A model generated the notes under the pieces. It worked only from the letters and a program-made list of their open reading frames with translations, was not told the DNA's origin and made no database searches. DNA of 64,000 nucleotides from Utricularia gibba (Eukaryota > Plantae > Magnoliophyta). Of the stretch, positions 92 through 50,528 are shown in pieces (the stretch's first letter is position 1; every line of letters begins with the position of its first letter). The position numbers and the translations under genes are program-made. The stretch covers positions 372,001 to 436,000 of the forward strand of contig NEEC01000026.1 of assembly GCA_002189035.1 (NCBI GenBank), given 5' to 3'.

Positions 92-664
92 CAGTGGCGG
101 AGAGCAAGACTTCATCTCCTCCAGGATGATCTTCCATGAATGAGGTAACATCATAAACCTAAAGGCAGGATTCATCTCACAAAATGATGCAACAATAACA
201 CCTTCCACTTTTTCAGGGAAAACCAAATACTCGAAAACCCAATGTGTCATTTCCAATACTCGAGATGAATGAATCATAATCCAGCAGCACTTAAGAATTT
301 CATTGGCGAACACCAGACATCAAACCAGTACACGAAATCCAAGCTCTACACAAGAAATAGTGCATAAAAGGGGAAAAAAGAATCCAGAATACACAAAGCC
401 GGCGATGGACAAGCAGGATCACAAGCCAACGAACTTACAGATACCCAAAATTCACTTTACACGCAATGCACCCACTAAAGATGAGATATTCCAAATGAAC
501 AAGCGAAGTCAGCAGAGCAGCCACTTTCCGAAAATTAGGAGGAAAACAAAAAGGGGAAAACCAAAAAGGTTTCTTACCTTTCCACCTATAATCAGCCAAC
601 AATCCTTACTCTTGTTGTGCGTCGCCACATCCTGGAAAGAGTGCACTTTCGGATCTGAAGCCAT
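92..664 (-). CDS. CB5: Cytochrome b5 (CB5-D/E type), partial; exons 664-578 and 158-92, last exon beyond the left edge; 5'UTR intron about 813-679
   Basis: Exon 1 reads MASDPKVHSFQDVATHNKSKDCWLIIGGK then GTAAG. Exon 2 (67 nt) reads VYDVTSFMEDHPGGDEVLLSATG, containing the heme-binding HPGG motif, with AG/GT borders. Confidence 0.96.
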
Positions 665-892
665 CGCCTTCCGCTAGGCTACAGAGAGCAATAAACGAAT
701 TGATGATCCGGATCAAAAAGGAATGAATCGGTTAGTCCACATAGAAGAGTCACAAAGGAACAAAATCGATCGCGAATAACAGTGAGCAGCAGGAGATTCA
801 GCGTCTCGCTCACCGAATCACAACTCCCGAGGAAGCAGATGAGGACTGACGGCGTGAGCGCGTGGGGATGGGAATTGGCTTCCTCCCACACT

Positions 893-900
893 TATTTATA
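893..900 (-). promoter_or_regulatory. TATA box of cytochrome b5
   Basis: TATAAATA on the minus strand, about 80 nt upstream of the 5'UTR intron donor (GTGAG at 813). Confidence 0.55.
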
Positions 901-1268
901 ATAAACCCAAGCGAGGGTCACGCTGAATTAAATACCCAATATTATTTCTGCAGATTTTAGATGGGGGATGGGAATTGGCTTTCAGAATCTTGGGTTTATC
1001 CTTTGTAGTTGTTGCTGGTCATTGCCTTCAGAATTTTTTTTTTTAATGCTTTAAGTCCCTCCCTGGTTTTGGATGCCGGTGACTTTAGTTGTGAAGGAAT
1101 TGGTTTGTTTATAGGAAAGATTAGATTTATTTGGACAGAAACAAGTCAAAACCGATTGAAATATTTCAATGATTCCGTTGGGAGTGCCTTCAGTTTGAAT
1201 TTTTTTTTGTTTTTTGTTTCTTGGCATATAAGTTGCAACTCATTTCAATGCTGTAATAACTTGCACAG

Positions 1269-2710
1269 GATATTGTTGCGTGTGACGTTGTTAATCCAGA
1301 CCACATAGATGTGAACTTTGATGCCATTGGTGGATTGGACGCTATTAAGCAAGAACTCTATGAATTGGTTATACTTCCCTTGAGACGACCTGAGCTATTT
1401 TCCCGTGGGAAGCTTCTCAGTCCACAGAAAGGCGTTCTACTGTATGGACCACCTGGCACAGGGAAGACAATGCTTGCCAAAGCAATAGCCAAAGAGTCTG
1501 AAGCCGTTTTTATCAATGTCAGGGTGTCTAGTTTGATGAGCAAATGGTTTGGCGACGCACAAAAGTTGGGTAAGTAGGCTGCCTGGTATATAAGTCAAGG
1601 TTCCCTGCTAAATAATTATTATGGATGGCCGTCGCTCTTAATTATAGCAAGTATTATTGTGTATGCTCAAAAATGCCCACTAGGCTCCCTAGTGTTTCCC
1701 ACATTATACTCTGCTCTATCTTTAGTAGAAACTTGTTCCGCTTGTTTTTATTTTATGAAGACGTATAGGGCATTAATGTTGCTGAATTGTGCGGCTTTTG
1801 AATGTCTCCCTCTCTTGAGATTTTGAAGTTTTCTAACTGTCTCACCCTTTTCCTTTTCTGGTGGAATTTCATGCACTTGCAGTGAATGCTGTTTTCAGTT
1901 TGGCGTACAAACTCCAGCCGTCTATTATTTTTATTGATGAAGTAGATAGCTTTTTAGGCCAGCGAAGGTCTTATGAACATGAAGCGATGACTAGCATGAA
2001 AACAGAGTTCATGGCATTGTGGGATGGTTTCACCACGGATGGTACGTTCTCTATTCTCGTATATCATCTAGAAAATATTTAATGATCTGGATCTAAAAAA
2101 TAATCAACCTTATTGGTCAGTATGCGGTACCTGAAGCGTGTCAATGTGTGTTCTATTACTCAAAATTTTACTTTTGAAATGATCCAGAACATGCCCGGAT
2201 CATGGTACTAGCAGCTACAAATCGCCCAGCTGAACTCGATGAAGCTATACTTCGGCGACTTCCCCAGGCATTTGAAATCGGCATTCCTGATCATAACGAC
2301 AGAGTTGTGATACTCCAGACGATATTGAAGAATGAGAAGGTGGAAGATGGGTTTGACTACGACCAAATATCAAGCATTTGTGATGATTACACCGGTTCCG
2401 ACCTGCTGGAGCTTTGCAAAAAAGCGGCATATTATCCCATCAGGGAAATGCTTGATGATGAGAAGGCTGGGAAATCATCTCAGGTGACTCTTGACTGAGT
2501 ACCGATTATGATTTTCTGTCCAGCCAACATGGGTTGTGTGTTCACTGACGCTCGCTCATCGATCAATTTGTTCAGGAGCCAAGGCCACTGAAGCAATCTG
2601 ATCTTGAAAGGGTCCTGGCCACAAGTAGACAGACAAGGGTCGCTGCAGCCCAGTTCCACCCACAGACTTCAGGGTCACGAGGGAGGGAGGGAGGGAGCGA
2701 GCGAGCTTGA
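1269..2710 (+). CDS. MSP1: MSP1/ATAD1-like AAA+ ATPase (family of At4g27680/At5g53540); exons 1269-1569, 1883-2041, 2188-2483, 2576-2710; N-terminal transmembrane exon not found; last exon frameshifted
   Basis: Spliced frame reads DIVACDVVNPDHIDV, Walker A GPPGTGKT, Walker B IIFIDEVD, TEFMALWDGF, SRH VLAATNRP...DEAILRR, and EPRPLKQSDLERVLATS. All junctions are GT-AG and in phase. Confidence 0.92.
2679..2706 (+). repeat. (GAGG)4(GAGC)3 microsatellite inside the last MSP1 exon
   Basis: Read directly from the sequence. Confidence 0.9.
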
Positions 2711-29790: not shown

Positions 29791-32442
29791 TAATGTTGTG
29801 CATGGGTCGAGTCCCAACAAGTTCAAGTTCAACTCATCGAGTCAATCTGAATCATCATCATCATCATTAGCCTCATCACTGGTAGTAATATTCCGCAACC
29901 TTATTTCTACTTGCATCCAATCTTTTAGGCAAATGCAAGCCTCTAATGTTTCAGTTGATAGGCTAAATCGATGTGGTGTAAGAACCCTACCACATGCACT
30001 AAAAGCACTCTCTGATGTAGGTGGTGTTAGGATATCTTTTTCTAATCTAGCTAAAGTTGGATAAAGGAATGTTTGATTCTTCCACCAACCAAGTATGTCA
30101 AAGTTTTCTCCCTTCTTTCCATGCAATTGTTGCATTGCATTGTATAATGCAACATCATTTACTTTAATAGTCATATTTGTGCAAGATGAAACTTGCACCA
30201 TAGAGCAATAATTATCAATGGCCGCAGCCCCGTTATCATTATCATCACCTATTAGTCCACCTCCACCACTTGAACTACCATATTCAATTTCATATAATTC
30301 ATATAAATGATCTAAAGCATCACAAGCATTTTTAAAAAGTCTATCAGCATCTAAAGTAAAATTAGGTACTTGAAGAAAATTATAAAAATTGCAAAATATT
30401 TTCAAACCATTTTGTAAACCAGATTTTTTCACTCTCGGATTAAGAATATTTGCAACAAGAAATAATGTAGGAATAGTTTCATAATATTTAAAAAAATTTA
30501 AAATCATCTCATGTATAATATCACAAACAATAGAATTAGTATATTATTTTTTTAAAAACTACTGTGATATCAACCAAAGCTAACAAAACTAAATGAGTTA
30601 TAAGATAATAAACACCACTAAATAATTCCATATGTCTATGAAATGTACTCATATAATTAATCAGAATATTTATTTTTTCAAAATCAGAAGCAAATAATTG
30701 AATATTTAAATCAGAGTTCATTACTAAAAAGATCTCCACAATATCTTGATACGGCAACACATAATACAATATAATAAGAATAGAATTTCACCTAGCTAGC
30801 AAATCTTCTTTCAAACTTTGAAAAGGAATATTGTTCACTTGATACAAACATTTAAAAGCATCTCTTTTTGTAGTTCTAACTTTTAAAGTAGAAACTAATT
30901 TACAAATATCAACAACTAAAACATTCAACATAGGAAGTTTCAAGGCATCTTGTACACACAAATTTAATATATGGCAAATGCATCTAGAATGAAAAAATAC
31001 ACCACTTATAATAGAATTCATAGAGTTTTCCAAATCACATATAGCATTTGCATTATTAGAAACATTATCAAGTGTAATAATAAAAACACAATTAAAAATA
31101 CCATATTCGCGACAAACATCATTAATAATCATAGCAATTTTTGATCCATTGTGATGAATATCAAAGTTTCTAAAGTCAACAATCCTCTTCTCAATGGTCC
31201 AATTACCATTAATCCATGTAATAGTCACAACAATATAATCTTCACCATTAATATTATGCCAACCATCACTAGTTAATGCAAAATTGCAATCCAAAGATTC
31301 AAATAAAGAAACTAATTCTTTTTTTTCGTTTTTCAAATTGATCTAACGCTATTCTAACAGCAGATCTTCTAGAAAAAGTAATAAATTGAGGTTGCATCTT
31401 CTTTGTAAAAAATAAAATTCATCATATATGGATTTTCAATATCAGAAAATAGTTTCTCACTAATAATTAAAGCAACTATATAATCAACTTGAGCATATTT
31501 CAAATCAAATGTAAATTTTTTCGAAATATTACCACCTACCACATTCAATTTCATTTGTTTGGAACAAATACTATATTTATCAAAATAAACTCTTTCAAGA
31601 TGACGTAAATAGTTAGAAGTGCTACCTCCCTTACCATATTTGTAGTTGGAAGCACAATAATTGAAAGTAGCCCTTCCTGTTTTTGAGTCATGTGTGAAGT
31701 GGTCATGCCAATCTATAGATCTTTCTTTAACCTTTCATTTAGTTGATGTTGTCGTCGATCCAGTAACTTCATTACAATTATCATCTTCTTCAATTTCATG
31801 AACAATATCATTGTTCATTTCTTCAGGTTGTTCAACATAATGATTTGAAGTATCATCCGTATGTAAAAAATAAAAAGATATATATTTGAATTCAACTTTT
31901 AAACCCACAAAAAATAAAAAAATATTGTTCTAAAATAACTAAAAACAAACAAAAGAACACAACTTTAATCGAAAAAATGCCATGATTTTTTCATAGAAAT
32001 CATGAAATACATCATACCGAAGCATTTGCCTTTTTTGAACTTGATTTTGAATGAGATACGTAGCGCAACATTTTTTGTCTTGAAAAACAAAAAAAAACGA
32101 GACAGAAATTAATAGAGAAACAGAGAATCGAAATGAAAGTCACTGTATAATGAGAAAATTTGAAGTAGAAATGGAGAATCGCAAATCGCACGAAGAATAG
32201 CTGCTAGGGTTTGAGCTTTGAGGTTTGAAAGCATGTAGGAAGTAAATGACTTGCAATTTTAGATCTGACCAATGGGAAAAGAAAATTTCCTTTTTTAATG
32301 CATCAACTGGCTGGGTTGACCCGAACCTGTCTAACCACGACCCGACTCACACCCGTCAAACACAGGTGCGAGTCAACTAATGGGTCGGTTACAGGTTGAC
32401 CCGGTGGATTGATGGATTGACCGGACTGGCTGCCCAACCCTA
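29791..32442 (-). mobile_element. hAT (Ac-like) DNA transposon, defective
   Basis: TIRs TAATGTTGTGCA and TAGGGTTGGGCA (reverse complement). 8-bp TSD GTTTCCCC / GTTTCCTC. Subterminal GACCCG/GGGTC repeats at 32310-32430. Confidence 0.88.
29842..31860 (-). pseudogene. hAT transposase (BED finger, catalytic core, dimerization domain), broken into four or more frames
   Basis: Motifs ALTSDGW, WTIEKRIVDF, ITLDNVSNN, HSRCICHILNLCVQD, ILNPRVK, DILGWWK...YPTLARLEKDIL, SESAFSACGRVL and LEACICLKDW. Confidence 0.9.
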
Positions 32443-33375: not shown

Positions 33376-34104
33376 TTATGTACGGATGCACTTGAGGCCA
33401 TCACAAATCCATAACCAAACCAGAAACAAGATCAAACAGATGACCGCATCCAGAGACAGAATCAGCAGCACTTGTTTCTTCCAAGCTGCCTTTGCCTTCT
33501 GATGACCGCCATTCTTGTGTAGATCACGCGCTAAGCCAATCCCTTTTCCACCAGATTCACCACCAGTCCCCTCCTCACTCCTTCTCCCCCCAATCCTGAG
33601 CCCTGCGAGCAATCTCTTCTTCATCCTTGACAACCCGGTTTCAGCACTCTGCCATGGAGGTGATTCAAATTGCAAGTTTCCACTTCCGCTCATTCGACGT
33701 CCGCCCGGGGGACTCACTCCTCCCATGTGATCGAAACCCAGTCCCAAAAACCGCCGGAAAACTGGGTTGAATTCACCTTGGAAGCAATGGGAGCTCAGCC
33801 TTTCCAACCTCTTCTCCCCCCTGTAAAACTGCTCAAACGCGTCCCTCACGCTCTCAAGGAATGAAAACCCCTCTGAATTATCCATCTTTTCATCAAATAT
33901 TCCCAAGTAAACGAAGGGGGCATCGACCAGGAAACTATACGTCCTCGATCGGACAGTATGGGTAAAGCTGGCGTGCAAAGGTGGTGTTTTTTCCAGGCAT
34001 TTCGCAGCGACCGCCCCAAGAGCTGCATCCTGGGAGTTGAATTCTGACAACACAAGCGTCCCCCTCGCAATGCACGCGTAATATATCAGACTCGGGTCCA
34101 TCAT
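33376..34104 (-). CDS. PHYL: Phytolongin (longin domain plus C-terminal transmembrane helix, no SNARE motif), single exon
   Basis: N-terminal longin IYYACIARGTLVLSEF...FTHTVRSRTYSFLV; C-terminus KAKAAWKKQVLLILSLDAVICLILFLVWLWICDGLKC. Intact 242-aa ORF. Confidence 0.9.
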   Translation of the reverse strand: MMDPSLIYYACIARGTLVLSEFNSQDAALGAVAAKCLEKTPPLHASFTHTVRSRTYSFLVDAPFVYLGIFDEKMDNSEGFSFLESVRDAFEQFYRGEKRLERLSSHCFQGEFNPVFRRFLGLGFDHMGGVSPPGGRRMSGSGNLQFESPPWQSAETGLSRMKKRLLAGLRIGGRRSEEGTGGESGGKGIGLARDLHKNGGHQKAKAAWKKQVLLILSLDAVICLILFLVWLWICDGLKCIRT

Positions 34105-35968: not shown

Positions 35969-38131
35969 ATGCGAAAGCTGCGTTTTCCGGAAATAAGAAC
36001 CTTTGTGAAGAAGACGTTGGAGCCAGATTCATTTGATGGATCATGGAATTGGGGATATTGGGTGGAGAAGGGCCACAGCAACTTCGATGTGGTCTCTGCT
36101 AACAAAGCTATCACATTCTATTCCGGGGCTGGGGAGATCGAACGTGCACGGAAGGTGTTCGACACAATGCTGCAAAGATCAATTGTATCTTGGAACGCCA
36201 TGATCAATGGATATTACAGATCGAATATGATTTCTGAAGCTCTGTTCTTGATTTCTCGCATGCACTCTTCGGATATCAAGTTCAACGAGACTACATTTGC
36301 CACCACGCTCGGTGTTTGCGGCAGAGCAAGGTCATTAGAATCTGGAAAACAGATTCATGGACTGGCTCTGAAATCTGCGCATCTGCGGTTCAACCTCGTG
36401 GGAAGCTCCTTGTTGTATGTATATGCTAATTGTTGCGAAATTGAAGATGGCCGAATGGTCTTTAATGAACTACACCATGAGAATGACATGTTATGGAGCT
36501 TGATGCTGATGGGATATGTTGAGTGCGGTTTAATGGACGAAGGTCACCGTGTCTTCAAAAGAATGCCGAGGCACAGCGTGGTGGATTGGACTACCTTGAT
36601 CTCTGGTTATGCTAAAAGTGGGGATGGCTGCAAGGAAGCATTAGAGATGTTCAAGGTGATGAGGATGAAAGACGACGCTATTCCCAATGAGTTCACTTTG
36701 GACTGCGTCCTGCGTGCCTGTAGCGAACTGGGGGATGTGTCCCTTGGAAAAATGGTGCATACCTTCATTGTGAAATGTGGGTATGAACTCGAGTGTTCCA
36801 TACATGGTGCTTTGCTTAGTCTGTATTGTCACTGTGGTTGTATGGATGAAGCTGAGAAGATACACCATGAATTTGGTAACAGGGCTGGCTCGAGTTTCAG
36901 CAGTATGTCAGAGATAAACGAAGCTTCTCACCATCTGGTGATTCATGGGTTTGCAATGTCTGGTAGAATTGCTGATGCAGAGAGGCTATTTATGGAGATG
37001 CCTATCAAGACGCTGTCTTCGTTCAACACAATGATCTCAGCGTATGCACGCTGCGGAGAGATTGACAAAGCAGTAAAATGTTTCGAGTCCGCAAAGGGAG
37101 AAGGGAGTTCCATTACTTGGAACTCGATGATTTCTGGATACATCCAGAATCATCGCCTTGAAGAAGCGCTTCAACTGTACTTGGCCATGCACAGATTGCC
37201 AATATGCAAAACCAGATCCACATTTTCTGCTTTATTTCGTGCCTGCGCCTGCGTGGGTTCTCTTCATCAAGGACAATCACTTCACAGTCATGTAGAGAAA
37301 ACTTCATATTCCAACAATGTTTACGTCGGCACTGCTCTAACTGACATGTACTCAAAATGCGGAAGCTTGGATGATGCAAGAGAAGCATTTAGGTCTGTTT
37401 CTGCGCCTAATGTGGCGACATGGACAGCAATGATAAACGGGTTTGCACATCATGGTCTTGGATCTGATGCCATCGCATACTTCACTCTGATGCTGCAACG
37501 TGAGGTAACTCCAAATGCAGCAACTTTTGTTGCAGTTTTATCTGCTTGTTCACACGCTGGTTTCCTAGAGATGGGAATGAAGTTACTTCAGTCGATGATA
37601 CACCGCTATGGCATTTCTCCAACCGTGGAGCACATCACCTGCGTGGTGGAGCTGCTTGGTAAAGAAGAACTAGCAAAGGAGGCCAAGAAACTGATCCAAA
37701 CTATGGAAATTGAAGCAGACAAAGTTCTCTTGACATCATTGCTCAATGCTAGCTGGAATTCTATGGACATGAAGTCGGCGGAGCAAGCCACCGGAAAGGT
37801 GGTCGCTCTCGATCCCCGAGCATCATCGGCCTATGTTATCATGTCCAACATGTATTCCAGGACAGGGAAGTGGTGGGAGAGGATGAAGGCGAGGGAGACA
37901 TTGAGAGAAACTGGAGGTAAGAAGGATCCTGGATGCAGCTGGATTTGCATCAACAACATAACTTATGTGTTCTCTGTAAATCACAGAAGCCACCCAAAAT
38001 CTGACCTGATGCTTGCTACATTAGAATCACTTAAAGCAAATGCATGTTCATATGCGCAGGTTTATCCTTGCTGTCTTTCTTTGAACAAATTCTCCAGTAA
38101 AACACAAGAGGTGAGAGTTCGTAAGAAGTAA
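35969..38131 (+). CDS. PLS-class pentatricopeptide repeat protein with E/E+ extension (no DYW), single exon, 720 aa
   Basis: Repeated VSWNAMI / WTTLISGY / TWNSMISGY motifs, TDMYSKCGSL, YVIMSNMY and the KKDPGCSWI E-domain motif. Confidence 0.93.
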   Translation: MRKLRFPEIRTFVKKTLEPDSFDGSWNWGYWVEKGHSNFDVVSANKAITFYSGAGEIERARKVFDTMLQRSIVSWNAMINGYYRSNMISEALFLISRMHSSDIKFNETTFATTLGVCGRARSLESGKQIHGLALKSAHLRFNLVGSSLLYVYANCCEIEDGRMVFNELHHENDMLWSLMLMGYVECGLMDEGHRVFKRMPRHSVVDWTTLISGYAKSGDGCKEALEMFKVMRMKDDAIPNEFTLDCVLRACSELGDVSLGKMVHTFIVKCGYELECSIHGALLSLYCHCGCMDEAEKIHHEFGNRAGSSFSSMSEINEASHHLVIHGFAMSGRIADAERLFMEMPIKTLSSFNTMISAYARCGEIDKAVKCFESAKGEGSSITWNSMISGYIQNHRLEEALQLYLAMHRLPICKTRSTFSALFRACACVGSLHQGQSLHSHVEKTSYSNNVYVGTALTDMYSKCGSLDDAREAFRSVSAPNVATWTAMINGFAHHGLGSDAIAYFTLMLQREVTPNAATFVAVLSACSHAGFLEMGMKLLQSMIHRYGISPTVEHITCVVELLGKEELAKEAKKLIQTMEIEADKVLLTSLLNASWNSMDMKSAEQATGKVVALDPRASSAYVIMSNMYSRTGKWWERMKARETLRETGGKKDPGCSWICINNITYVFSVNHRSHPKSDLMLATLESLKANACSYAQVYPCCLSLNKFSSKTQEVRVRKK

Positions 38132-42675: not shown

Positions 42676-45006
42676 TCAGTTTCTGCAGCGTATGCACCGA
42701 AGCAGTGAGGCCCAAAAACCAGTGAAAGCTTGATGAGGTTCAGGCGATTCAAGAGGATCCTTGAACTTTGCCTCGGTGCTGAGTTCCTCGAATGAGTCCA
42801 CCAGATTTTGAAGTCTGGCTACAAACTCAATCAACAGAGAAGTGAAGGTTGACAGGGAGAGGGCGCTCGCACTTTCGAAAGTACTGACTTCGCGCTCGTT
42901 GAGGAGGGCGTCTCCGAGAATGGAGAGCCTCGAGGGCCACATTGTTTGCTGTCGGAGCAGAAGCTCTTCGCCGGATTGAACATTCAGGCTCATGCTGATG
43001 CTCCTGTTGGGGTTGGGGTTGGGGTAGTAGCCTCGCGGTGTCTGAAGAGATTTTGGGTTCAAAGAGCCTACGGAGCTGAGCAATTGATTCTTGTGCTCAC
43101 TGTCCTTGAATTCAGTAGGCGGCTCTTCTTGATCTTTGATCCTCGTTTCAGCTTCCCATCTTTCGGATTTGATCAAAAGGTACGATTTTTGATCAATCAG
43201 TAGCTGCAAATCCTCAGCAGCGTTGTGAACTTGATGCAGGATGTCTCCCGGGCTCAGTTTCTCCATCTTTTCCAGTTTCTTCCCAAGAATCCGCAGTATT
43301 TTCGATCCTTCAGCACCCACCTTTTGGATTTGATCCTTGAACACAGCTCTAAGTTCAGATGGAGCCTGAGATATGACAAACAAACATATGCTGTCCATAT
43401 TCTGGCTCACAACAGAGTTTAGAATCAAGTGAATGTAAAAACGCTGAAAGCACAAGTAAGAAGATACCTGTATTTCTGAAAGTATGCATCCGTGCAAAGC
43501 CATCACCATGAAAGAACAATGCCTAAGAGCACCACTGAGCTTGACGTAGTTACTCCAGGGGTAATTCAACATCTTGTAACGCCCGTGTGGTGGCTCCCAT
43601 ACGGCAAAGCCTATCTACACTCATCAGCGTTCCAGACACAAATACCGTGCACATGAGGACAGGTCAAAACCTCAAAGCCACTGAAACAGAAAGAGAGAGA
43701 TACCAACCAAGGATTCCTCTTTGCTTGTGGACTCAAAAGCAGCTCTGTATCCTTTATAAAGAGGATCATCAGAAGGTTGGTAGACAAGAATCTTTGATGG
43801 TATCCTCGTGTACTCAATGCACTGCAAATACATATTGATACAACCTGAAAAGGAAGCCTGTGACATGAGGAGGAGATGTCGTCATGACAGAGGATTTCAT
43901 ACGCGCGTAATCAATCACCTTCCAAAGATGTGGCAACCCCTTCAAAGTTTTTTACTACCAGCTTGTGCAGATCTTCTCCGGCCCAAATCGGGAATACGCA
44001 GACATTTATAAGCAAGCATACACCAGCACCAACAGCTATCAAAAGCAGTCTAGAACTGGCAGTTTGGATGAAATCTGATCCGGATACCAGAACGATGCAA
44101 AATGTCAACAAGAAAACCCGGAATCCATATTCATACTGCTTCATAGCCGGGTGCAACTTCAAATAGCTAGTCACAGAGCCTGGAACCATGAAACATGCAA
44201 GGCAAGCACCGAGACAGGGACATACAGTTAAACGTATTACAATGCAGCAACTCTCATCATATAAAAAATAATGGATTGACATAAACCAAACACCATGCTT
44301 AGCAGTATAAGAAGCACAGGAAAATAATATCCAGCGAAACGCTTAGGCGCTGACTCACCTGCGACAAAGATATTGATAACAACCACCGCTTCTTGCCATT
44401 CTCCAGCCATCTTAGACAACAACGCGATCCCAAGGGACAGTCCCCCGGCAAATAAGGTCCCTAATGCTCGATTGAACCCCTTGTTCAATGTGGCCCCTGT
44501 ACATTAGTTGTGTCATGATGAGACTAGCACCTTTATGTAATCCTAGATTCGATGTCTAACTATTCCAACCAGAGAGAGGAATTAGATGCCATTATCAATA
44601 TGAAACACGAAAAGAGAGCAGGGCATTTCACCAAGAAAGATGTAAACATACCTATGCTGAACTCGAACACGACGACGACAGTGAGAATAGCCCAGATAGA
44701 ATGCTTGGTGATATAAGTGGAGGGCTCCTTGAAAAAAATGAGGAGAGAAACCAGGGCCAAAGCGAAACCCACTTTCGCCGCAAACACCAACTTTCTAGGA
44801 TCGGACCTCCCCATCTCATAAGAAGACACTGCCATGGCCTCCACATTGTTCCACCACCCCGAAAATCTTCGTCCCAGAATCTTGAAAACATTCCAAAAGC
44901 AGGTGTCTGGTGTAGCATAAAAATCATCGGATTCGACGTCCGAAAAGTTTCGCGCCCTGCCTCGATCGACAAAGCTTTGTCGCAGAGAAGCACATTTATT
45001 GGCCAT
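42676..45006 (-). CDS. ALMT: Aluminium-activated malate transporter, ALMT4/ALMT9 (vacuolar) clade; exons 45006-44652, 44496-44359, 44179-43919, 43844-43708, 43614-43468, 43365-42676; intact
   Basis: Motifs [68 protein letters not shown] and [16 protein letters not shown]. All junctions are in phase. Confidence 0.94.
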
Positions 45007-48748: not shown

Positions 48749-50528
48749 TCATCGGATCCGGTTCAAGTGAGCAAATGGTTCTGAAACTGCTGCTGCTGCT
48801 TTTGCTGCTGCCTGGGGTTTAGCGGCTTCCGGTGTACCAAACACATTCCAGAATCGAAGAGTTTCATCTCCTGCAGCGGACGCCACTTGGCATCCATCGG
48901 GACTCTGAGCCATAAAAAGAACTCGCGAGGTGTGGCCCGTCAGCTCAGCCACCTTCACCATGGAAGGGTATTTCCAGAGTGTCAACTGGTTCTGAGTAAA
49001 CCCATGAGAGCTCAGCAGCTCACGCTCATTCTTGTTCCACAGCAGTGCACACACTTGAGATCCAGTGTCCACTGAGTTTAAGCATGCGCCTGTGTGAGTG
49101 TTCCAGAACTTGATCGTTCTGTCTCCCCCACCTCCGCCAGAAGCCAGCAAGTTGCCTTGAAAAGGGCACCACGCCAGTGCTTTAACGGCTGCTGTGTGTT
49201 CCTCGAGCCTGTGAAGCCATTGGGATGCACCATTTGTTGACGCCACGGATCGGTCCCAGATGTGCAGAAAGTTGTCGTTTCCACCACTTGCTAATTGCTG
49301 TCCCGATGCCGACCATTTCAAACCGCATACCTCTTGATGATGGCCCTCATACGTTTCAATGATGTGCGACCTCACTCTCACATCGTTGTTGATGATTCGC
49401 CCATCCATTCCTCCGGTAGTAAGAATGTGACTGTTCCAGTCCAATGCACCGACGCGTGATACATGTCCTCCTCTCAGTGTTCTCAGCTGTTACAACAAGA
49501 ACAAAAATGAACACCTTGGCAACATACTACAGAATGCTTATGATACCACAGGATGGAAGGGAACTCTCACCAGTCTATTCGCATGGGTATCCCATAACTG
49601 AACCTCGGAGTTGTTAAGGCCAATGGCAATATGCCTTCCATCAGGAGCCCATTTAACACTGGTGACAGGACCATTCTCTTCCTCAATAGTCATAAGCTCT
49701 GAAGTTGCTCCATCGGCAGCATCCCACAAATACACGGTGTGCCCCAGGGCAATTGAAAGCACATTACTGCTACCCCAATCCAGTAAATTCAAATAGTAAT
49801 CATCCAAGAGATCAGGGGCATCTAAAGTCCTCTCGGAAGTCTGCATTATCACACCCCCAACTGCTTAAGAACAAGAACAGGTAACGAATCAAGGAAAAAA
49901 TGAATCAGCATAAAACTTACTTGTGGAATATGCCTGTGGGCTTTGGCGGTTTTGACTTGTTTAGCAGATGAAAAGAACTCCGAGGGAATGGCTTCCACTG
50001 GCTTAGGAGGCTTGTTTTTGAAAGCCAAAATCCGAGTCCTGTTCATGTTGAATGTCTCCGCCAGCCGCTTCCTGTACGCTTCTCTTGCTGGAGAAGAAAC
50101 CACTGCAGGATTTTCCTTACCTTTATTACCTTCCGATAGCATGTACTGAGCGTAGTCGAAATCCATCGCCGATCTATTTGGTATGAACCGATCGAGCTAC
50201 AGAAAAATCCAGAATCATCTATGTTAAAACCAGAAATCCTTTTTTTTTTTATCAGTAAAACATCACAGAAATCCTTTTTTTTTTCAGTAAAACATCACAG
50301 AAATCTCATTTCCCCCAAACTCGACCAACAAAAAAAAAAAAAAAAAAAATCAAAACCCTCCGAAACGAATCGTTCGAAGCCAAGATCTGCGGATACCCTG
50401 GGAATTAGAAACAATGGGCCACTTACATTTTCCCGAGAATTTCTTCGATGCAGATGCTGTTCTTGGAGCGGGAACCTGGATCTAGACTTCTTCGAAGATG
50501 CAGAAGAGTTGGATAATCCTGCGTCCAT
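48749..50528 (-). CDS. CDC20: APC/C activator CDC20; exons 50528-50427, 50196-49921, 49840-49571, 49486-48749; intact
   Basis: C-box DRFIPNR, KEN box (GKENP), RILAFK motif, [18 protein letters not shown]40 repeats and a C-terminal IR tail. Confidence 0.97.

Follow-up and report, generated by a model that had tools for sequence, protein, structure and literature searches.

The left end of a 64,000-nt stretch of Utricularia gibba DNA (contig NEEC01000026.1; the whole stretch is called the window here, and positions are counted from its first letter) carries two genes arranged head-to-head: an AAA ATPase gene of the MSP1/ATAD1 type on the plus strand, with the ATPase body at 1269–2710, and a cytochrome b5 gene on the minus strand, with its start codon at 664. 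Yeast Msp1 and mammalian ATAD1 (Thorase) are outer-membrane extractases of mistargeted tail-anchored proteins. Judged by its exons, the ATPase locus is a descendant of a member of this family, and the allele present in the window would be unable to encode an anchored member of it. Transcripts were followed in contigs assembled from four runs, X1 and X5 (organism A), X6, and X9 (organism B), which were read as RNA because their contigs carry spliced joints. Contig depths were not used for expression levels, since they cannot rank genes.

The initial annotation had placed the start of the ATPase homology at an acceptor at 1269. This was confirmed: the homology begins at 1269 (DIVACDVVNPDH...), right behind a polypyrimidine tract and a CAG. 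Four exons follow, numbered here as in the ancestral gene. Exon 2 (1269–1569, +) carries the linker, the Walker A motif GPPGTGKT and the pore loop KWFGD, and has the same boundary as in cotton, orchid and two further relatives, L004 and L005. Exon 3 (1883–2041, +; joints 1568/1882 and 2040/2187), with 90% identity to cotton, carries the Walker B motif IIFIDEVD. Sensor 1 (ATNRP), the arginine-finger region and the AAA lid are located in exon 4 (2188–2483, +), which is supported by RNA, Pfam and PDB matches and shows 71% identity to cotton. The last exon as now read (2576–2710, +; joint 2479/2572) translates as EPRPLKQSDLERVLATS...SERA and ends at a TGA stop (2708–2710). The three introns between the four exons are spliced GT..AG, as shown by RNA contigs of three runs.

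The gene model was searched one exon at a time, the exons never being merged into a single protein query. Pfam detected AAA and AAA_lid_3; with the Walker A, Walker B and sensor 1 motifs named above, the gene encodes one AAA domain of the classical kind and its lid. Residues 3–100 of exon 2 match the PDB structures of Msp1 (5w0t, 6pdw) and ATAD1 (9kmd, 9l3m, 8vxt), which were the best single-domain structures; the matches begin at exon-2 residue 3–5 and therefore take in the linker preceding the AAA fold. Exon 4 matched 8vxt, 7upr and 6pdw, with Rix7 reaching about equal score on this exon. Two-domain Cdc48/p97 proteins outscored Msp1/ATAD1 only through the sum of two stretches. The nearest plant proteins are named ‘protein MSP1-like’ or ‘ATPase family AAA domain-containing protein 1’ in their sources, and the best identity among named species was observed with Sesamum (Lamiales, 87%). 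Word searches of the protein collection with the whole of exon 2 and with residues 1–67 returned nothing above 90% identity and did not recover the gene’s own N-terminal fragment. Across 100 columns in which at least 90% of 136 plant fragments agree, the AAA core deviates from their consensus once, by a conservative change, and all three differences between X5 and the window within this core are synonymous.

What precedes exon 2 in relatives is a short conserved exon. At two cotton loci (L001 and L002), an orchid locus (L003), L004 and L005, the last two being closer relatives with about 80% nucleotide identity in exon 2, exon 1 comprises 66–67 codons, encodes a transmembrane (TM) helix (...LSCLVLFVGL...) and ends with ...RLGRPLI.TN.YE in phase 0. 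Intron 1 measures 351 nt to 3.3 kb (3.3 kb in orchid), and the next exon opens with D[VI][VI]ACDV. The exon-1/exon-2 boundary, ..N.YE / D[IV][IV]ACD, is kept in cotton, orchid, L004 and L005 and falls on window position 1269.

The conserved first exon (TM helix...RLGRPL..N.YE) is absent from both strands of the 64-kb window. In tblastn searches at permissive settings with the N-terminal 65–67 residues of five relatives (cotton P0006 and P0038, orchid P0042, and exon 1 of L004 and L005), the best E value was 0.18 and no match fell in 665–1268, which bears out the earlier claim that no frame of this interval encodes the exon. An inverted or displaced exon 1 was not found elsewhere in the window on either strand, and nucleotide comparison of the window with exon 1 and intron 1 of the relatives returned T-runs only. 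In front of exon 2 lies instead an AT-rich non-coding stretch (982–1268, +), unique in the window, which ends with the polypyrimidine tract and the CAG acceptor and is covered by a continuous X1 contig (814–1469). This stretch looks like a remnant of MSP1 intron 1 which has lost its donor and is retained in the RNA.

The 5′ end of the cytochrome b5 gene lies close by. Its start-codon exon (578–678, −; ATG 664–662, MASDPKVHSFQDVATHNKSKDCWLIIGGK; Pfam Cyt-b5) includes 14 nt of 5′ untranslated region (UTR) and is joined by RNA at 156/576 (cut +2) to coding exon 2 (92–158, −), whose translation, VYDVTSFMEDHPGGDEVLLSATG, contains the HPGG heme-binding motif. A loose RNA contig end at 91 translates as ...KDATDDFEDV on the minus strand, and the following cytochrome b5 exon is located left of the window. 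Upstream of the start-codon exon, a 5′-UTR intron of 135 nt (679–813, −; GT..AG on the minus strand, read as CT..AC ends at joint 678/814 in contigs of X1, X5 and X6) leads to a non-coding first exon (814–872, −). Transcription starts near 869–872, X6 contig 12 stopping at 869 with three extra letters. The segment 873–965 is read from its sequence, and from the X5 match over 814–965, as a divergent promoter shared by both genes together with a leftover of the MSP1 5′ leader, ending with ATGGG (961–965). A TATA-like element, TTATTTATAATAAA, lies at 891–904 inside this common region. Joint 678/814, the X6 contig end and the TATA-like element all agree with the earlier description of 665–1268 as the space that holds the cytochrome b5 5′ UTR, its intron and its TATA box.

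The RNA contigs revealed two forms of the ATPase locus. X1 is identical to the window, with 0 mismatches. Its contig 3 covers 1469 to 814 unbroken, with neither mismatch nor gap, before passing through the cytochrome b5 UTR splice to 678–576, and 966–1268 is left unspliced; in its contig 4, the three downstream ATPase introns are removed. No joint into 1269, no loose end at 1267 and no branch at 965 or 1267 was observed in the X1 contigs. The beheaded locus is thus transcribed. X5 represents another genotype of organism A, with scattered single-nucleotide polymorphisms and introns which differ by 1.6–3.5% from the window. Its contig 7 is composed of 576–678, 814–965, 308 letters foreign to the window and 1267–1469. 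Over 814–965 it shows 2 mismatches, then departs from the window at 965/966, the 308 letters replacing 301 window letters (966–1266). X5 depth is zero over 1001–1200.

Run X9 comes from a near-identical relative, three of its four contigs being at least 99% alike. One X9 contig matches 1267–1412 and carries 118 extra letters in front, of which the final 30 are GTCGACCTCTCATTCACACCAACTCTTACG. Together with AG 1267–1268 these letters translate as (G)RPLIHTNSYE; this is how exon 1 ends in relatives, and the joint to exon 2 falls at the conserved boundary, 1267/1269. Metagenome scans with this exon-1 end of X9 (24-mer) and with the start of exon 2 (29-mer) gave no match. Since X5 resumes at the same nucleotide as X9, its 308 letters are most simply read as what is left of the 5′ leader, followed by exon 1 and its splice to exon 2. 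They directly adjoin 814–965 and the cytochrome b5 5′ exon, and exon 1 therefore belongs between the cytochrome b5 promoter and 1267. ATG 961 was considered as the true start of the X5 form: the 5 + 308 + 2 letters from there would give 105 codons and lead into the frame of 1269. Relatives have only 66–67 residues before that point, so a start within the 308 letters is more likely, and the agreement of ATG 961 in frame may be due to chance.

The point at which the two forms diverge bears a junction footprint. An exact second copy (964–981, +; GGGGATGGGAATTGGCTT) of the 18 nt at 864–881 is located at the X5 breakpoint 965/966. The two copies are spaced by 100 nt and are the only ones in the 64 kb, where none was expected (100 shuffles). 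End-joining repair in plants typically leaves a brief stretch templated on neighbouring sequence at the breakpoint. Because every outgroup has exon 1, the window form is read as derived. The junction points to a deletion with templated filler, which would have taken the remaining 5′ leader, all the codons of exon 1 (about 66, for the TM anchor and linker), the exon-1 donor and the start of intron 1, with the 18-nt copy of a sequence 100 bp upstream remaining at the junction. The promoter, of less than about 100 bp, divergent and common with cytochrome b5, would have outlived this deletion, so that the locus is still transcribed. Its RNA continues across what appears to remain of intron 1 into former exon 2, the three later introns being spliced normally. 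That the AAA core still looks intact would be due to the youth of the loss.

Taken together, these results make it probable that a plant gene for an MSP1/ATAD1-type AAA ATPase has recently lost its function in the allele carried by the window, and suggest that the two forms, that of the window and that of X5 and X9, are alleles. Among the readings proposed initially, the decapitation of MSP1 by a deletion is favoured by the 308 letters that X5 carries between 965 and 1267 and by the exon-1 end that X9 joins at 1267/1269. The conservation of the core had also been taken as a hint of either recent loss or continued use. Recent loss stands, a conserved core fitting a young event, while continued use is opposed by the layout of the open reading frames (ORFs).

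In this layout, upstream ATGs at 961 (15 codons), 968 (28 codons), 1046, 1073, 1169 and 1248 open short frames; six upstream ATGs lie in other frames and one, in the ATPase frame, is halted after two codons. The ATPase frame is closed by TAA 1257–1259. The next in-frame ATG is at 1470, immediately behind GPPGTGKT, and no in-frame start codon occurs after TAA 1257 and ahead of the Walker A motif. A product from ATG 1470 would be devoid of Walker A, and the allele is therefore most likely null. As far as the reading frames indicate, the window message would not permit a working enzyme by normal initiation, and an anchorless enzyme is unlikely; presumably no protein is made from this allele. A cryptic donor at 1017/1018, downstream of ATG 968, is out of frame with 1269 and was used by no contig.

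The 3′ end of the ATPase frame is altered too. In the window the last exon reads ...SGSRGREGGSERA and is halted by TGA 2708–2710; the cotton protein runs on with ...SDDYQVQAAINELSRLVVSQ.... The segment 2680–2747 (+) consists of a (GGGA)4(GCGA)2 microsatellite and, behind it in another frame, the conserved C-terminal tail (DYPVQSIIRDLS, stop TAA 2745–2747). Only the next frame (2709–2744; DYPVQSIIRDLS*VVVLSQ) gives a recognisable tail, the cotton tail being DYxVQxxIxxLS-R-LVVSQ. Its out-of-frame local score was 43 vs 16.5 ± 3.2 for shuffles, and 43 was reached by 0 of 500 shuffles. The frame change is located in the microsatellite, which is bridged by no RNA contig, and an assembly indel inside the repeat is a possible source of the break. 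At the same place X9 shows an 8-nt gap and AAA in place of TAA; gap arithmetic does not bring back the tail frame. The earlier statement that the exons remain open and in phase holds for the AAA core, which is intact, and fails for the last exon, where TGA 2708–2710 leaves the conserved tail out of frame.

In the X9 copy, where exon 1 is retained, derived non-synonymous changes number three (D>N, Y>D and R>S; window 1338, 2433 and 2611) vs one synonymous change at low depth, their polarity being judged against relatives. The Y>D change falls in the conserved AAYFPIR motif. Together with the tail frame break, these changes hint that constraint on the ATPase copy had already weakened in the clade. 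Alternatively, the non-synonymous excess of X9 could result from low-depth error.

Several points weigh against the loss-of-function allele. The assignment of the 308 letters to exon 1 rests on the 1267 boundary common to X5 and X9. Their number is close to that of the 301 letters they replace, which is compatible with a very divergent non-coding haplotype. The intact form is known from RNA alone, and contigs lose rare variants, so that a minor intact form is possible in X1. The search for exon 1 covered the 64-kb window, and the lack of a protein product is deduced from ORF logic only. A different account of the two forms is that the window carries the beheaded member of a very young duplication of the whole cytochrome b5–MSP1 pair, undergoing ordinary duplicate decay, the intact form of X5 and X9 being derived from the sister copy; a full-length gene would then be retained in the organism. 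The 1.6–3.5% intron difference of X5 from the window and the presence of more than one haplotype in the cytochrome b5 intron would fit two copies, and both the out-of-frame tail and the three non-synonymous vs one synonymous changes of X9 hint at relaxed constraint on the gene in the clade. However, the X1 contigs neither branch at 965 or 1267 nor leave a loose end at 1267, and X5 has no depth on 1001–1200. Each sample (X1, X5) therefore shows a single form, the pattern to be expected of alleles that are fixed in separate lines. The flanks, including non-coding ones, are moreover 98–99% identical, and we consider a duplication rather unlikely.

The ATPase allele could also be functional, giving an anchorless soluble MSP1-like enzyme through non-AUG initiation or an alternative first exon and co-regulated with the tail-anchored cytochrome b5 by way of their common promoter. 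Such an anchorless soluble ATPase from a shared promoter had been suggested initially, and the suggestion was right in that a transcript exists and arises from the shared region; downstream splicing is correct and the catalytic motifs are intact. It fails on the coding side: TAA 1257–1259 closes the frame, the first in-frame ATG lies past the Walker A lysine, and six other-frame ATGs stand upstream. In addition, X1 shows no alternative splice into 1269, the conserved tail is out of frame and the adjacency to cytochrome b5 is not conserved at five other loci (see below), which makes a functional allele very improbable. Even less credit can be given to an intact gene whose exon 1 lies left of the window, with cytochrome b5 nested antisense inside a long intron 1. 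A long intron 1 does occur in other plants (3.3 kb at the orchid locus), and the exon-1 search covered the window only. This earlier proposal is nevertheless unsupported, since the 308 letters of X5 stand immediately between 965 and 1267 and adjoin the cytochrome b5 5′ exon, so that the exon of the intact form sits between the cytochrome b5 promoter and 1267, and since X1 RNA is continuous over 966–1268 with no joint into 1269. A loss or replacement of exon 1 by local misassembly around 880–980 appears equally far-fetched. An exact 18-nt repeat at a spacing of exactly 100 nt, right on the breakpoint, speaks for such an artefact, but the X1 contig, a data type other than genome assembly, matches 814–1469 with 0 mismatches and 0 gaps and speaks against it.

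The loss-of-function allele can be compared with several known systems. With yeast Msp1 and mammalian ATAD1, the locus shares a single AAA domain plus lid, Walker A and B and the KW[FY]G pore loop; the window allele differs in being without the N-terminal TM anchor and without a usable start codon. Transcribed unprocessed pseudogenes and presence-absence deletion alleles with filler DNA are alike in the kept promoter, the lost 5′ coding exon, the downstream splicing and the templated copy. In the case of filler from plant double-strand-break repair, the mechanism proposed for the window is drawn from the junction footprint only.

In Arabidopsis, At4g27680 is published as ASP1, reported to be a mitochondrial ATPase affecting the root stem-cell niche and reactive oxygen species (ROS) (PMC11174532), and At5g53540 is APP1 (PMC5008728). 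ASP1 and APP1 belong to the same plant family as the window gene according to the initial assignment and to the names of the nearest matches, a relation at the level of the family. They are full-length genes whose disruption gives root stem-cell and ROS phenotypes, as reported in these papers, whereas the window allele is beheaded. Extraction of mislocalised tail-anchored proteins is not shown for plant members (PMC8644595). The chances are about even that beheaded and intact forms segregate as alleles in one species, providing lines with and without the MSP1-like ATPase in which the null is tagged by an untranslatable transcript. If true, this would offer a ready-made genetic contrast on a plant Msp1-type tail-anchored extractase, listed as not yet found in a 2021 review; allelic forms could serve as naturally occurring knockout and intact lines for the MSP1-like function of plants, which is still uncharacterised. 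As to annotation, gene finders would skip the locus or model a headless ATPase, and RNA support would falsely hint at a functional ‘soluble MSP1’. The locus would also be a small example of gene loss in a compact genome, in which a short deletion leaves a templated junction and the damaged gene is still transcribed from a promoter it has in common with its neighbour.

The proximity of an MSP1-type gene to that of a tail-anchored protein such as cytochrome b5 had been taken as a hint of a functional link. This was not supported, as the adjacency is absent at five loci. No cytochrome b5 exon was found within 10 kb upstream at cotton L001 and L002 and orchid L003, nor in the available upstream 844 nt of L004 and 1140 nt of L005, the test being weak with queries of only 22–29 aa. 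The neighbourhood of the two genes thus looks like a coincidence, a by-product of the compact genome.

Three further observations concern the cytochrome b5 gene. Its 419-nt intron is retained, or pre-mRNA was sampled, in X1 and X6 contigs which are unspliced across 131–605; the spliced form is also present. X5 shows two haplotypes in this intron region (131–605). An imperfect 16-nt inverted repeat (796–811 / 913–928, 81% complementary) flanks the cytochrome b5 first exon and the TATA-like element.

Elsewhere in the window, an intact intronless gene for a 720-aa PPR protein with an E motif is located at 35969–38131 (+), and its exact product is not on record in the public collection searched. 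Transposon remains, a Ty3/gypsy-type reverse transcriptase–RNase H fragment and hAT dimerisation and DUF659 fragments, lie in AT-rich stretches at 18573–19106 (+) and 29842–31336 (−). Exons at 33376–34104 (−), 42676–43572 (−) and 48749–49444 (−) correspond to a longin-domain SNARE-like protein, an ALMT malate transporter and a CDC20/Fizzy WD40 protein, respectively.

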